From the sequence record OP953026.1: a stretch of DNA of 64,000 nt, one strand, 5' to 3'. Shown here in pieces: positions 31,107 to 38,526 of this stretch. How positions within the stretch are numbered: the first letter of the stretch is position 1; every line of letters begins with the position of its first letter. The notes below the pieces were generated by a model, which saw only the letters and a list, made by a program, of their open reading frames with translations, made no database searches and had not been told where the DNA came from. Position numbers and translations under genes: made by a program.

Positions 31107-31619
31107 CTAACTAAAACGAACCACCATTACCTCTGTACCAAAAGTATCTGCAACCCACTGGTTAAATTCTTTATCAGTGATACCGCGTAGGTTCAGATTA
31201 AATGAGGCATTGTCAACAAGAATATATTTTACAGACGATATTAATTCTTCTTTAATATCTTTTTGAATAGATGATTCCTCAGGTTGATGAATATATTTAC
31301 GGAGTTGGTGTGTAATTAAACAAGAAACAATATTATCTTTAGCATTCTGGAACTTAGCCAGTACAGCCTGTTTAATTTTATCTTCTACAAATACAGCTAG
31401 ACATTCGCCAGGATGACGATTAGCAAACTCAATCAATGCAGTTGTACTACCACATTGCCGACCTACAAATAATCCAACAGTCCTGTATTCACGAATAACA
31501 ATATGACCAATAGAATTAGATCGATAATTAACCCAGTTCTCATTCGTTTTTTGAATTAAAGCATCTAGGATATCTTGGTACTTTACAATAGTTCTTACAA
31601 ACTGATTAGAGTTAGTCAT
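31107..31619 (-). CDS. degenerate P-loop NTPase-like protein
   Basis: EYRTVGLFVGRQCGSTT (Walker A Lys replaced by Ser) and YILVDN. Confidence 0.6.
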   Translation of the reverse strand: MTNSNQFVRTIVKYQDILDALIQKTNENWVNYRSNSIGHIVIREYRTVGLFVGRQCGSTTALIEFANRHPGECLAVFVEDKIKQAVLAKFQNAKDNIVSCLITHQLRKYIHQPEESSIQKDIKEELISSVKYILVDNASFNLNLRGITDKEFNQWVADTFGTEVMVVRFS

Positions 31620-31903: not shown

Positions 31904-32911
31904 TTAATCAATGATTAATGGTGCTAGTTTTACCTGATAGATACCTGATAACAATTGGCTTTTCAACATATATGCTCCACCACCAACTGGCATTTTAGAT
32001 CCACCTACAATGATCATGCTATTATCCGGACCTTTAGCTATAGATGAAATATTAAGGAATCCGATACCTAGTTCAAATGGTTCAGCCCATTTCCGGCGCC
32101 TAATATTAAAACGTTGTGCAAACATTTTAGTTACACCGCCGACATCAACAGCGTTAAGGTAATTAAAATAGTCCCCATCTACATAACCATTACCTTGCCA
32201 GATTGTTCCTTTATCAGCAGGTATAATCATCCAAGGTGTTTGCTCCCATATTAAGGTAGTTGCATTATATCGATAAACTTCAAGATTAGGTATGTTCTTT
32301 GTATTATCCCAACCACCAAAATGGTAAAAGTAACCATTATAAAAGAATAACTGTTGACCTGAACGAGCACCACCTGAATAGTCTTGCCCGCTAAGCCAAG
32401 ACTTACTTGATGGTTTTAATCGCATTGCGTTTACGCCAATTGGGTTAACGCATAGAATAAGATCATTACCATCTGATGCGGAGGCTGTGCCCCAAAGTGG
32501 TACGGGACCACTATATCGCTCAACCCTATTGCCTGTAGCTATATCAAAATGTTGTATAAAGTTAGATGTTCCCGTACCACCATTACCAGCCGAGTTCCAT
32601 CCAGTAATACCGCCATAAACAATAAAGTTATTCTTATGTAATGTCCCAAATCCTAAAGATACCCCTGGTAAGAATGTTCCAGAAGCAGTTGCACCTATAT
32701 CGGCAAATGGCGATATGGTAAAACGTCTGAACACAGTTGCAGCTGTTTGTCCTTCAGTATGATGACCAGATCCAACATACAGTGTATTTCCATCCACATA
32801 TGACATTGTACCAGCTAACGCTACAGGTAGATCACCTAATTTAATAATTTCATTAAATCCAACCAAGGGTAACTCTTCGCCTATATCTGGTGATAATAGT
32901 AATTCAAACAT
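31904..32911 (-). CDS. Kelch/beta-propeller protein (paralog 1), probably virion-associated
   Basis: repeated YxxGG(W) blades; MFELLL N-terminus; TATG late motif upstream. Confidence 0.8.
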   Translation of the reverse strand: MFELLLSPDIGEELPLVGFNEIIKLGDLPVALAGTMSYVDGNTLYVGSGHHTEGQTAATVFRRFTISPFADIGATASGTFLPGVSLGFGTLHKNNFIVYGGITGWNSAGNGGTGTSNFIQHFDIATGNRVERYSGPVPLWGTASASDGNDLILCVNPIGVNAMRLKPSSKSWLSGQDYSGGARSGQQLFFYNGYFYHFGGWDNTKNIPNLEVYRYNATTLIWEQTPWMIIPADKGTIWQGNGYVDGDYFNYLNAVDVGGVTKMFAQRFNIRRRKWAEPFELGIGFLNISSIAKGPDNSMIIVGGSKMPVGGGAYMLKSQLLSGIYQVKLAPLIID

Positions 32912-32961
32912 GAGTATATTCTCAAGTAATACAGTTAAGTCATAAGATAAACGGTAACGGC

Positions 32962-32989
32962 ATAAAGGCAGCCAAATGGCTGCCTTTAT
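32962..32989 (-). terminator. terminator hairpin
   Basis: ATAAAGGCAGCC-AAAT-GGCTGCCTTTAT. Confidence 0.85.
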
Positions 32990-33063
32990 AAGGTGTAAAG
33001 ACTGTTACCAATACTAAGGTACCCTGCCCCTCTGTGAGGTTCTAGCATTGGTGTACGTAACAC

Positions 33064-34077
33064 CTACTTATCACTTGGTGGTAGTGGAGCAGGAAGGATG
33101 AACTTGTATATTTCTGTCTTCGTTTCTGCCTTTCTACCGAACGGTGGGTTAGTCGAGCCCAACGGAATTGAACATCCGCCAACCAGATACAGCTCTCCTT
33201 TATTACCAACCACACCGGTCGCGTTGCGATAGCTAATACCCGTATCAAAACGAATAAATCTTTTACCAGACACATCATAGCGAACCGCACCGAGTTTACT
33301 ACCACTCCAGCTAATATAGCTGAAGATACCTTCATGGTAGTTACCGGCGCCCTGGTTACCACCATGGTATTCGGTAGGTAATATATCGTACACTTCCCAC
33401 AATTGTGTATAAATCGACATTCTCATGATTGTCGTCATTGCTGTCCCAGCATCGAATTTCGCCAGGTGATCCGGATTTGATGCAACACTGGATCCCCATC
33501 CACCCATCACGTAAATGTAGCCTTTATGTTTGAATATAAAAGCACCACTTAGACTAGCAGCAGGAAAGCCTTTCGGGCTGTTATGATAGACGCCATCGGT
33601 TGTGTAATAACCGAACTGATTACTATCGTGGAATTGGACGTAAATTCTGTTGTTATCTTCGTCAAATACCGTGGAGTTACCATAGTTCCCACGAGGAGTG
33701 CTCCAACCAAGATTAGTTATAGTCTCCGCAGAAGCATCTATGGCATGGACCACGCTAGAACTCCAGCTACCATTAGACCTACCGTTGATTAAATAAACTC
33801 TACCAGTTCGTGAGTCTTGCGCTGGATTCGTATGATAGATGTAGTTGCTTAAATTCTTATTATTCTCAAACGTACCATCTAATTTAAACCTGCGTAATCC
33901 TGGATCACTAGAACTAACATCTGTACCGCCACCCTTAACGAATAGTTTATCGTTCCAAATATAAGGGATAGAACCATGTAACGGAATATCCAGGTCAGCT
34001 ATTTTTTCATAACCGATATATTGTACTAATTCAACTGGCTTTATTTTACCACTAGTTGCTAATAGTAATTCAAACAT
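33064..34077 (-). CDS. Kelch/beta-propeller protein (paralog 2), gp298-like
   Basis: LFVKGG, IYVMGGW, LYLVGG; MFELLL N-terminus. Confidence 0.85.
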   Translation of the reverse strand: MFELLLATSGKIKPVELVQYIGYEKIADLDIPLHGSIPYIWNDKLFVKGGGTDVSSSDPGLRRFKLDGTFENNKNLSNYIYHTNPAQDSRTGRVYLINGRSNGSWSSSVVHAIDASAETITNLGWSTPRGNYGNSTVFDEDNNRIYVQFHDSNQFGYYTTDGVYHNSPKGFPAASLSGAFIFKHKGYIYVMGGWGSSVASNPDHLAKFDAGTAMTTIMRMSIYTQLWEVYDILPTEYHGGNQGAGNYHEGIFSYISWSGSKLGAVRYDVSGKRFIRFDTGISYRNATGVVGNKGELYLVGGCSIPLGSTNPPFGRKAETKTEIYKFILPAPLPPSDK

Positions 34078-35919: not shown

Positions 35920-36372
35920 TCAACGTGGCCATTGTAAAGAAGTTATCTTATTACCATTAATGTAGACATCGGTCACTTCGCACCAATCATTAATTCTGTG
36001 TTCAATAATTGGAACATCATTTCGGCCAGCCACTCCAATCATATTCCATTTAACATAAATATTCATTAGATCAATTGTTAATTTCTCTTTTATGAGTTTA
36101 GGAGAAATTAATTTAATATTATTAATGTTAAAGAAGTAATTATTAACTTCTTCTAAATATTCATTAGTATTAGTAGTACTAACTTTGCCTTCATGTTCAA
36201 GTGAGGATGGTTTATTCTGATTTACAATATTGCTCACTAGACTTCTTAAAACGGCACTTGCCCTACCAGCTTCGCGTCTTTTATACTTATCATAGTCTTT
36301 TACATTAGCTGCAATTTTATCAAATTCTTTTTGGGCATAGATTAGCCCTGGTAAAAGTTCATTTTTGATCAT
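35920..36372 (-). CDS. hypothetical protein
   Basis: 150 aa ORF. Confidence 0.8.
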   Translation of the reverse strand: MIKNELLPGLIYAQKEFDKIAANVKDYDKYKRREAGRASAVLRSLVSNIVNQNKPSSLEHEGKVSTTNTNEYLEEVNNYFFNINNIKLISPKLIKEKLTIDLMNIYVKWNMIGVAGRNDVPIIEHRINDWCEVTDVYINGNKITSLQWPR

Positions 36373-36424
36373 TTTATAATTACTCTATGTTGTTTATACA
36401 TATTTTAATATACATACGTAAAAA

Positions 36425-36573
36425 CAAAATATAAAGCCTCCCCGAAGGGAGGCGATATATCGTCATTAATGCCCAGCAAAGAGTTTTACTCTCTGGGAGC
36501 CAGTTGGAAGGGGGACTGGCTCCGATCTATTATGACTAATGTAGAAACAAGGGGGAGGGATTATTTCTACATA
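36425..36573 (-). ncRNA. candidate sRNA A with C-rich anti-SD loops
   Basis: TATGTAG start motif; three hairpins (loops UCCCUCCCCC and CCCCCUUCCA); UUCG terminator 36436-36453. Confidence 0.65.
36436..36453 (-). terminator. intrinsic terminator
   Basis: GCCTCCC-TTCG-GGGAGGC then TTTATATTTT on - strand. Confidence 0.9.
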
Positions 36574-36585
36574 ATATTAGATACA

Positions 36586-38526
36586 TTACTGGTAGTTTTC
36601 ATTACCCATTGCTAACCTACCTTTTATAGACCGATCTACCCATTTTGCGGCGGCCTCCATGATATCAATGAATGAGTGGTATTGCCGCATTTTATTAACT
36701 TCCATCACATCATCATCAATCCCAGGGCCAAAGCATGCGAATAACAAATCATTCCAATCATAGTAATCGATACCAGCTATTGGACTAGGGTTATCCAACA
36801 TATCGTAGATTAGTCCTTCCAGTGGATCTGGTAAATCAGGGAACTTGAAGCTAAGAGTTATCTGACGTTCCAATGCCGATATAATTAAGTTCATGGCCTT
36901 AGCTGCTTCTTCTTCAGTAAGAGCTTTGAGTTTACTATCAGTAGATGGATATTTCGCGACCACGGTGCGAGGTGAATTATAGGTACCCTTACCTGTAATA
37001 GTACCGGCAGGCCATTTAACACTAGTCTTGAATCCAGCACGTGCCTTGTCTACGATAGCCTTTGCTTCTTTGTATACGTTAGCGTCTAGGTTATGTGCAT
37101 TCTTAATGAGTAGATCCAATGCAGGTTTAGTCTTCTGCCTGTAAGACTCCATTTCGCGATTAGACTTTTCTTCGAGTTTGAAGAATGGTTCTACTGCACG
37201 AATGGCATCCTCGATACTGACTTTACCATTAATACTCAGTACGTTAGCTATACCATTACTATTGATATCGCCAGTAACGAATACCTGCTTATTAAGCCAT
37301 TGTGGATTGCCAAATGTAGATTCTAGTTGTTCCAGAAATCCTCTTGCACTGGACGATGAACGCCAGATACGTTTCTGATCACCTCGATTAGAAATGCCAA
37401 GAACTTTTTTGATTGAATCGATAAGACCTTCATTTGAGACTTGTATAAAACCGGGAGTATTAATGATGGACTTCTCTACATACCCGCCACGAATAACCCG
37501 ATTTATAAAACCATTAAGACCACTACCAGTTTCGGCCATATCTTTCATGATTTCTATATTCGTTTCACCGGCACTTTGGGCATTGTATAAATAATAAGAA
37601 CCATCTTTGAATTTCAGTATAATCCAGTCATCCCCAGTTAGATATGAATCAATATTACTATCATTCATACTTTGATATTTAATGAATTCTGGATTAGTAC
37701 TTAATACTTCTTCAATGAATTCTTCTAATGCCGCAGAATTATTAATAGCATCAACCGGTAGAATTTCACCATCAATGGGTTCAGTAGTTGGACCAGTAAC
37801 AATGGCAGGTAACGGATCCTCCTCTACAATAACAGTTTCTTCCACTGGTAGAGCACCACATGAAGCATCAATTAGTTTATTAAAACTACTAATGATCTCA
37901 CCAAGTGCTACAAGAACTGCTGGCTGTTCAACTTGTTCAACTTTAGCAATACCAGTTTCTGTAAATTCTTCAGTGATTCGGTTATAAACTTCTACTAGTT
38001 GGTTAGTAAGTTCTGCTACTTTTGGCAGAGTCTGCTTAGACAGAGGTTCAACTACAGTTGTATCTGCTTCAACAAAAATAGAATCATCTTCTTCTAAACG
38101 GCTAGTATTAGCTGAGCCAGCTGTGAAGTTATAAGGCATATCTTGAATTACTTCATTAATTTCAGATGCCTCCATATCTTCATTTAGACGACCACTATAA
38201 GTACGCATCATACCTTCTGCTTCTTTAATAGTGGAATGCGCTAAGCGTCCCCAATCACCACGCATAATACCGCGCTCGGTAAGACCGCGTGCAGCTGAAC
38301 CAAGATCAATAGGTTCTTCAATAAATGATTGTTCTTCAACCCACTCTTCATTACTGTAACATTCTTTTAGAATGGTTTTAAATTTAGTACTAAAGGGTTG
38401 TAGAATCTTTTTATCTACTTGTTCAACATTTGTTTTAAAGTGTTCTAGACTTGGTGTAGCTTTTGAAGATACTTTTTCAGTACCGCTATATAGCGTACGG
38501 TTTAGGAAGTTTAGCATTTTATTCAT
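36586..38526 (-). CDS. internal head protein, gp303-like
   Basis: 646 aa acidic; (S/A/G)xE prohead-protease sites (VSNE|GL, MGNE); recalled phiKZ gp303 N-terminus. Confidence 0.75.
   Translation of the reverse strand: MNKMLNFLNRTLYSGTEKVSSKATPSLEHFKTNVEQVDKKILQPFSTKFKTILKECYSNEEWVEEQSFIEEPIDLGSAARGLTERGIMRGDWGRLAHSTIKEAEGMMRTYSGRLNEDMEASEINEVIQDMPYNFTAGSANTSRLEEDDSIFVEADTTVVEPLSKQTLPKVAELTNQLVEVYNRITEEFTETGIAKVEQVEQPAVLVALGEIISSFNKLIDASCGALPVEETVIVEEDPLPAIVTGPTTEPIDGEILPVDAINNSAALEEFIEEVLSTNPEFIKYQSMNDSNIDSYLTGDDWIILKFKDGSYYLYNAQSAGETNIEIMKDMAETGSGLNGFINRVIRGGYVEKSIINTPGFIQVSNEGLIDSIKKVLGISNRGDQKRIWRSSSSARGFLEQLESTFGNPQWLNKQVFVTGDINSNGIANVLSINGKVSIEDAIRAVEPFFKLEEKSNREMESYRQKTKPALDLLIKNAHNLDANVYKEAKAIVDKARAGFKTSVKWPAGTITGKGTYNSPRTVVAKYPSTDSKLKALTEEEAAKAMNLIISALERQITLSFKFPDLPDPLEGLIYDMLDNPSPIAGIDYYDWNDLLFACFGPGIDDDVMEVNKMRQYHSFIDIMEAAAKWVDRSIKGRLAMGNENYQ

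Follow-up and report, generated by a model that had tools for sequence, protein, structure and literature searches.

A conserved small RNA of phiKZ-type jumbo phages with two C-rich hairpin loops: a candidate trans-acting base-pairing RNA

The 64,000-nt stretch of sequence record OP953026.1 analysed here (the window, numbered from its first letter) comes from a phiKZ-type jumbo phage of Pseudomonas aeruginosa. On its minus strand, within the 213-nt gap between PHIKZ303 and PHIKZ302, it encodes a structured RNA whose two long hairpins each display a pyrimidine-rich loop containing UCCCCCU(U). This RNA is the small RNA (sRNA) of phiKZ-type phages previously published as TU237. By analogy with bacterial RNAs that carry such loops, we posit that TU237 might be a trans-acting, chaperone-independent base-pairing RNA that binds G-rich sequences of the host, a reading that is the likeliest of those considered here, with a probability of roughly 0.35. 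Its placement as a new phage-encoded member of the known class of C-rich-loop base-pairing RNAs, in a functional sense and not as a statement of homology, is probable on the same analogy.

The transcript and its fold

A position in the window is converted to one in phiKZ by adding 237579, and over the 1 kb around the locus several phages, fnug and PaZh_1 among them, are 100% identical to the window, while the phiKZ reference is 99.9% identical. From an ONT-cappable-seq map of phiKZ, Putzeys et al. (2024, Microlife, PMC10914365) described TU237 as an intergenic RNA of 141 nt that has a start site of its own and ends at the terminator T131 upstream of PHIKZ302; their northern blot confirmed both its length and its abundance, and also detected a read-through form. 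These data uphold the original prediction, made from the letters of the window, of a discrete non-coding RNA that is more than the 3' untranslated region (UTR) of gp303. The same authors list TU237 as one of 17 phiKZ '5'UTR-derived ncRNA candidates' (ncRNA, non-coding RNA) and offer no function for it, and the text of their paper makes no mention of C-rich or anti-Shine-Dalgarno (anti-SD) loops (PMC10914365). Earlier differential RNA-seq (dRNA-seq) and Grad-seq studies, which sampled early infection, did not report TU237. The RNA and its elements in the window are as follows:

36430..36570 (phiKZ ~274009-274149), minus strand: small RNA TU237; length from PMC10914365, 5' end inferred from the TATG rule
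36570..36573, minus strand: TATG core of a late-type promoter of the non-virion RNA polymerase (nvRNAP); inferred start G36570, 16 nt past the gp303 stop
36572-36561 / 36550-36539, minus strand: arms of hairpin 1; stem AUGUAGAAAUAA/UUGUUUCUACAU, 12 bp including one U.G
36560-36551, minus strand: loop of hairpin 1; UCCCUCCCCC, 10 nt
36523-36515 / 36504-36496, minus strand: arms of hairpin 2; stem GGAGCCAGU/ACUGGCUCC, 9 bp, -14.6 kcal/mol
36514-36505, minus strand: loop of hairpin 2; CCCCCUUCCA, 10 nt
~36497-36472, minus strand: hairpin 3; bulged, with an A-rich loop, sharing 2 nt with hairpin 2; the least supported element
36420..36453 (stem 36453-36436), minus strand: intrinsic terminator T131; GCCUCCC-UUCG-GGGAGGC followed by UUUAUAUUUUGUUUUU, an interrupted U-tract

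The phiKZ late promoter consensus is (-3)TATG(+1), with transcription starting at the G (PMC7618050). A 141-nt RNA that starts at G36570 has its 3' end at ~36430, within the U-tract, which is consistent with the published length. The promoter core TATGTAGA is the same at 8/8 nt as that of the characterised late promoter p119L, and its TATGTAG is invariant in the nine haplotypes that, representing 47 GenBank records, were used for all analyses of variation; judged by its sequence, the promoter looks late. When the window (36573-36590) and phiKZ (117590-117625) are compared, TATGTAGA stands at both start sites and AATGTAT lies upstream of the sRNA promoter and p119L alike, with a spacing of 7 nt and 12 nt, respectively. 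The transcript had been predicted to run from the TATG at 36573 with a 12-bp first stem: motif and stem are both present, but the start falls at G36570, so that 10 bp of the stem lie inside the transcript.

The 228-nt region folds with z = -7.3 (0/200 shuffles equally stable), and the 141-nt RNA with z = -5.9 and a minimum free energy of -51.6 kcal/mol. The two long hairpins, the third bulged hairpin and the UUCG terminator were all recovered on the minus strand where they had first been drawn. In the ensemble of the 141-nt RNA every base of both loops has an unpaired probability of 1.00, in agreement with the claim that the CCUCC of loop 1 is fully single-stranded. The accompanying view of this pentamer as an anti-SD seed holds to the extent that the loops are anti-SD-like, but they are better described by the UCCCCCU common to both. 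TU237 thus presents at least two stable hairpins with single-stranded apical runs of at least four C, as do the RNAs of the C-rich-loop class. Being interrupted, the U-tract serves Hfq poorly as a 3' module, a trait shared with other C-rich-loop RNAs. The 3' half of loop 2 (36503-36510) also has CUUCCAA; its likeness to the anticodon loop of bacterial tRNA-Gly(UCC) is probably a coincidence, and there is no phage tRNA-Gly here.

Runs of five C are scarce in the 280-kb, 37%-GC phiKZ genome (20 and 35 on the two strands). A scan of this genome for hairpins with CCCC-containing loops returned 65 in total, and hairpins 1 and 2, which lie 36 nt apart, are the only ones among them in which a stem of 9 bp or more carries a near-pure pyrimidine C5 loop. 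In nearly all the others the stem is 6-7 bp long and the loop mixed, and many that were inspected are intragenic; the scan revealed no paralogues of the RNA in the phiKZ genome. The two C-rich hairpins exceed chance expectation.

Conservation and variation within Phikzvirus

The 47 GenBank records in which the RNA is present all belong to Phikzvirus. In 35 of these 47 phages, gp303 beyond residue ~506 cannot be aligned with the gene of the window (~50% nucleotide identity over ~37400-36600), and homology restarts within a few bases of the sRNA promoter. On the other side, in the group of T2P, U5, U1B and phi9_PA9, the gp302 protein is 68% identical, as against 98-100% identity in DNA for the RNA. 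To judge from these alignments, both flanks are mosaic and the RNA between them forms a conserved island. A mosaic junction lies at the 5' edge of the RNA gene (C-terminal part of gp303, window 36590-37450, minus strand), and in the T2P group the tRNA genes downstream of gp302 are also at least 98% identical.

The loops are near-invariant in the nine haplotypes. Each of them shows a single C>U change, seen in loop 1 only in the phiKZ reference and in loop 2 only in phage PA7 (MZ444140), and both changes keep the capacity to pair with G. In the phiKZ reference record loop 1 consequently reads UCCUUCCCCC, without the CCUCC core that is kept in the other haplotypes examined. Stem 1 shows one compensatory change from A-U to G-C, which divides the haplotypes four to five; stem 2 has two one-sided changes in PA7, both of which give G.U; and stem 3 has one change from G.U to G-C, along with a base pair at its foot that is broken in MZ444140 (C-G to A-A). 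The terminator stem is invariant, and the U-tract differs in length by 4-6 nt among haplotypes. As expected for C-rich-loop RNAs, the loop motifs are thus kept among relatives, here within one genus and with stem covariation amounting to one pair. Taken as comparative evidence, the variation speaks for hairpins 1 and 2 and for loop sequences under constraint. Since the wobble variants in the stems pair solely on the minus-strand RNA and leave A.C mismatches on the opposite strand, they fit an RNA structure rather than a DNA structure, and a DNA-level cruciform or protein site is disfavoured.

Searches for homologues outside Phikzvirus with blastn in its 'distant' form returned terminator-like fragments only, and C-rich hairpins are absent at the syntenic site past the gp303 homologue of 201phi2-1. 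Pattern searches of IMG/VR recovered PA7 alone, and a loose two-loop pattern gave at least 120 candidate matches, none of which, by BLAST, resembles the RNA apart from the PA7 contig. Among the 96 short matches from a scan of metagenomes, BLAST identified no true homologue.

Likeness to known C-rich-loop RNAs

Two bacterial RNAs share the loop motif of TU237, namely sX13 of Xanthomonas and HPnc5490 of Helicobacter pylori, the latter of which we take to be RepG. The heptamer UCCCCCU is a motif of loop 3 of sX13 and of the HPnc5490 loop (PMC3771888), and it is present in both loops of the phage RNA. sX13 represses mRNAs with G-rich motifs near the start codon, and this repression needs both the C-motifs of its loops and the G-motifs of the targets, while Hfq is dispensable (PMC3771888). 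Like the phage RNA, sX13 (115 nt, with 4C/5C apical loops on its three stems) is highly structured, with multiple stable hairpins bearing C-run loops; sX13 itself operates in a GC-rich host on G-rich motifs near start codons. There is no sequence homology between them, and sX13 is not among the Rfam matches of the phage RNA. Furthermore, unlike sX13, TU237 is encoded by a phage, whose own polymerase transcribes it inside the phage nucleus, probably at a late stage.

A comparable architecture is seen in the alpha-proteobacterial 'cuckoo' or alpha-r14 RNAs (RF02344), which have 2-4 hairpins, each with an anti-SD-like CCUCCUCCC loop (PMC4615179). TU237 shares with them the tandem hairpins, the anti-SD-like loops and the variable stems, and the two loops of the model align onto its own two; however, it has UCCCUCCCCC and CCCCCUUCCA in place of CCUCCUCCC and scores 19.7 bits against a gathering score of 58.8. 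As the host clade is unrelated, the resemblance is convergent rather than a sign of membership, and we regard the Rfam match as architectural only. Another Rfam match, to STnc100, covers only the terminator, and at permissive thresholds nothing came near a gathering score, with no riboswitch or leader family among the matches.

Further RNAs with redundant C-rich loops that act chaperone-free on G-rich ribosome-binding sites are the UCCC-motif Rsa RNAs of Staphylococcus aureus, LhrC of Listeria and 6C/B11 of mycobacteria (PMC2790875, PMC4132741, PMC6486639). These RNAs, which regulate stress responses or virulence from the chromosome and whose targets have been mapped, show no homology to TU237; they are of the same convergent class. 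In the papers examined we did not find a reading of TU237 as an RNA with two UCCCCCU seed loops of the sX13, HPnc5490 or cuckoo type.

Among phage RNAs, species 1 and 2 of phage T4 (rnaC and rnaD) are stable RNAs of unknown function in the tRNA cluster of a lytic phage, and they are cut out of tRNA precursors. TU237, by contrast, precedes the tRNA genes and has a start and a terminator of its own. The other phiKZ leader RNAs, such as the 5' UTR of PHIKZ221 and the gp298/297 intergenic RNA, are like TU237 among the 17 short terminated transcripts; in the genome hairpin scan, however, these other candidates lack a long-stem hairpin with a C-rich loop, and the gp298/297 RNA has a long A/U-G/C terminator stem instead.

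Absence of phage start-site targets and the proposed mode of action

The phage's own ribosome-binding sites are not targets of the loops. Among the 369 annotated phiKZ start codons, the Shine-Dalgarno (SD) motifs counted at -20 to -4 were AGGA in 140/369 genes, GAGG in 93/369, GGAG in 64/369, GGGG in 9/369 and GGAGG in 8/369, and GGGGG was found in 0/369 start regions (-25 to +5). The earlier contention that the seed spares phage messages is therefore sound, in that C5 or CCUCC would largely leave them alone. As there are no phage start-site targets, the partners of the loops, if these pair with RNA, are expected in the GC-rich host; an AT-rich phage nearly without G-runs at its own starts likewise points to GC-rich host or competitor transcripts. 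The host bias suggested in the original prediction fits this absence qualitatively.

The top-ranking candidates for pairing, gp188, gp193, gp196 and gp178 with GAGGGAUUA, were discounted because the pairing uses bases inside stem 1. Pairing in cis with gp302 in the manner of an anti-SD was also rejected, its start region having only a weak GAG and no G-run.

Some sequences elsewhere in phiKZ are related or complementary to the loops. Many phiKZ terminators have the near-identical hairpin CCCTCCC-TTCG-GGGAGGG (e.g. phiKZ 3738, 120606, 152942, 221806, 237245 and 263270). Loop 1 (CCCUCCCC) is the same sequence as their 5' arm, and could pair with their 3' arms at about -15 to -19 kcal/mol if these were ever open. 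The gp298/gp297 intergenic ncRNA, likewise already published (3'UTR_PHIKZ298; window 32900-33075, minus strand; re-annotated phiKZ 270595-270485) has a long terminator-type stem, just 5' of which a G-rich GAGGGGCAGGG is one mismatch from full complementarity to loop 1. In the minus-strand RNA of gp296, an HNH endonuclease, a 9-bp hairpin with a GGGGGU loop occurs at ~31350-31380 (phiKZ 268934-268957); it is the longest-stemmed hairpin with a G5 loop found on a transcribed strand and a conceivable kissing partner of the C5 loops.

The mode of action that we propose for TU237 is as follows. Transcription begins at the inferred start G36570 from the late-type TATG promoter of the nvRNAP, 16 nt past the gp303 stop, and ends ~141 nt on at the intrinsic terminator, which also closes the gp303 message and leaks into the gp302-tRNA operon. 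The two rigid hairpins keep the 10-nt UCCCCCU pyrimidine loops permanently single-stranded, and these would act as seeds for G-C-rich pairing to G-runs or to stretches resembling GGAGG, as a rule within or close to ribosome-binding sites, such that pairing would block translation or alter RNA stability. The partners would be GC-rich host or competitor transcripts rather than phage messages. The identity of the transcript, its fold, the accessibility and conservation of its loops and the lack of phage start-site targets are shown; action in trans, targets in the host and an effect on translation are matters that we infer.

Several observations weigh against this proposal. Set beside 400 composition-matched shuffles, the loops gain nothing in duplex energy with phage start regions, whereas the 16S anti-SD, used as a positive control, is enriched (52 sites vs 23 with -8 kcal/mol or lower, a count reached by 4% of shuffles). 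An extended loop 2 is marginally worse than the shuffles, with one site at or below -12 kcal/mol vs 8.9 +/- 4.4 and 1.5% of shuffles as low. A genome-wide duplex scan of the phage yielded nothing beyond the 3' arms of terminators, themselves closed up in hairpins, and the antisense strand of the RNA itself. The comparative depth is shallow, the nine haplotypes being drawn from one genus with identity of at least 87%. Synthesis of the RNA takes place inside the phage nucleus and is probably late, and its export to the cytoplasm is only presumed from the tRNAs encoded with it. By late infection little host mRNA is left, most of it having been replaced, and the late-type promoter together with this scarcity weakens any role in general host shut-off. 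Finally, phiKZ has 17 similar promoter-proximal terminated leaders (PMC10914365), so abundance alone is no sign of a function in trans.

Genomic setting

The genes flanking the RNA in the window are:

36586..38526, minus strand: PHIKZ303, virion head protein; without a terminator of its own before the small RNA
35920..36372, minus strand: PHIKZ302; the first gene entered by terminator read-through

Past PHIKZ302, the same strand carries in order tRNA-Leu, tRNA-Pro, gp301, tRNA-Met and more tRNA genes. No terminator lies between the gp303 stop (36586) and the sRNA start; T131 (36453-36436) is the first one past gp303, and it leaks into gp302. The absence of an intervening terminator gives the layout of a 3'-UTR-derived sRNA that is simultaneously the leader of gp302. 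In particular, the RNA has its own promoter past the upstream open reading frame, starting just beyond the stop, and shares its terminator with the gp303 mRNA, as do the Type I 3'-UTR-derived sRNAs (classification in PMC9438474).

Downstream, phiKZ with a transposon in orf302 (orf302::Tn) adsorbs to strain Env201 and yields no progeny or plaques there; the authors of this 2025 preprint call gp302 a defence inhibitor and concede polar effects as a general limitation (PMC12676376). The insertion falls 3' of the small RNA and 5' of the tRNA genes, and a polar effect on the latter is not excluded in PMC12676376 as a source of the defect. gp302 itself has no Pfam match, its sole family being a PHROG of unknown function. 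The phage tRNAs need the nvRNAP (PMC12571901), which agrees with an operon driven from a TATG promoter. Taken together, the small RNA heads an accessory module that probably serves anti-defence.

Two more TATG motifs occur on the minus strand between the terminator and the gp302 start, at 36399-36402 and 36413-36416. The former, distal one (AAAUAUGUAU) is invariant in the nine haplotypes, unlike the proximal one. From its sequence, the TATG at 36402-36399 might act as an nvRNAP promoter close to gp302, in which case the sRNA would be a separate gene.

Alternative explanations

The main rival, a reading that we hold to be only a little less probable than base pairing, sees the RNA as the by-product of a leader or attenuator: a strong late promoter and a leaky terminator would set the transcription of the gp302-tRNA operon and end the gp303 mRNA, leaving a stable terminated leader whose hairpins would protect its 3' and 5' ends instead of binding targets. 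This is close to how Putzeys et al. read TU237, namely as premature or conditional termination in the 5' UTR of PHIKZ302, with read-through seen; 34 of 42 such terminators over six phages act alike, and the leaders of this kind in phiKZ number 17 (PMC10914365). It also suits this reading that the RNA leads an operon in which disruption causes a defect specific to one host (PMC12676376) and the tRNAs are nvRNAP-dependent (PMC12571901). However, we found no alternative antiterminator fold: blocking the 5' arm of the terminator costs 12.3 kcal/mol, and the sole substitute fold pairs loop 1 with the terminator 3' arm. With the best non-terminator fold so much worse and no Rfam riboswitch or leader family near threshold, the RNA does not qualify as a riboswitch or as an attenuator with a competing antiterminator fold, the latter of which we rejected; factor-dependent antitermination is possible. 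A by-product also leaves unexplained the near-invariance of C-rich 10-nt loops beside diverging flanking genes and their uniqueness in the genome, and the invariant second TATG (36402-36399) could be gp302's own promoter. Quite improbable in our estimate is a protein decoy or sponge, in which the loops would bind a host or phage RNA-binding protein, e.g. ribosomal protein S1, or a factor of defence or anti-defence tied to the gp302-tRNA region, so as to titrate or recruit it. The display of one motif twice on rigid stems is a typical sponge layout, the loop sequences are conserved, the phage offers no convincing RNA targets, and the locus adjoins a gene required on strain Env201 (PMC12676376). 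Set against this, no candidate protein is known, the idea is purely inferential, and no loop has a GGA motif of the kind bound by RsmA, the only A-rich ARN-like stretch being inside stem 1.

We give very little credence to the two remaining readings. A decoy titrating host Rho had been raised alongside the original prediction, and the RNA is indeed locally C-rich in its loops (28% C vs 19% G over the 141 nt). Rho loading, however, needs ~60-80 nt of unstructured C-rich RNA, and here only 2 x 10 nt are single-stranded, with the rest stably paired and no rut-like stretch; moreover, phiKZ transcription is independent of the host RNA polymerase. Hardly better placed is a small protein gene, a frame of 32-33 codons (MIPPPRF..., with a polyproline run) that opens with an AUG located 7 nt from the 5' end. 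The claim that the RNA has no open reading frame is right for the window, and A>G at 36564 gives an AUG-initiated open frame in 5/9 haplotypes. Nevertheless, the AUG is absent in the window, phiKZ, 124.01 and T2P, has no SD and lies inside stem 1, where the A>G change that creates it is matched by U>C at 36549 on the opposite arm, keeping the stem. The substitutions are not coding-like either: in MZ444140 the frame has ~6 non-synonymous changes vs 1 synonymous, and its stop codon is shifted.

Implications

A bolder form of the base-pairing proposal, which we consider a long shot, is that TU237 is an exported late sRNA whose C5 seeds discriminate by base composition between the transcriptomes of a 66%-GC host and a 37%-GC phage. 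It would then be a host-selective repressor of translation or stability, or else the RNA arm of a gp302-tRNA anti-defence module that silences an induced host defence message. As an exported host-selective repressor it would have partners throughout the host transcriptome and essentially none in that of the phage. Should base pairing prove wrong, TU237 would be one more terminated leader.

In the papers searched we found no function reported for a small RNA of any strictly lytic jumbo phage; phiKZ is the model in which phage nuclei are studied, and it is also considered for therapy. TU237 is abundant and already validated, and its seed motif has a well-understood mode of action in bacteria, making the hypothesis testable by loop mutation. 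If true, it would mean control of the host at the level of RNA by a phage that transcribes its genes without the host RNA polymerase, and it would bear on whether small RNAs exit from the phage nucleus.

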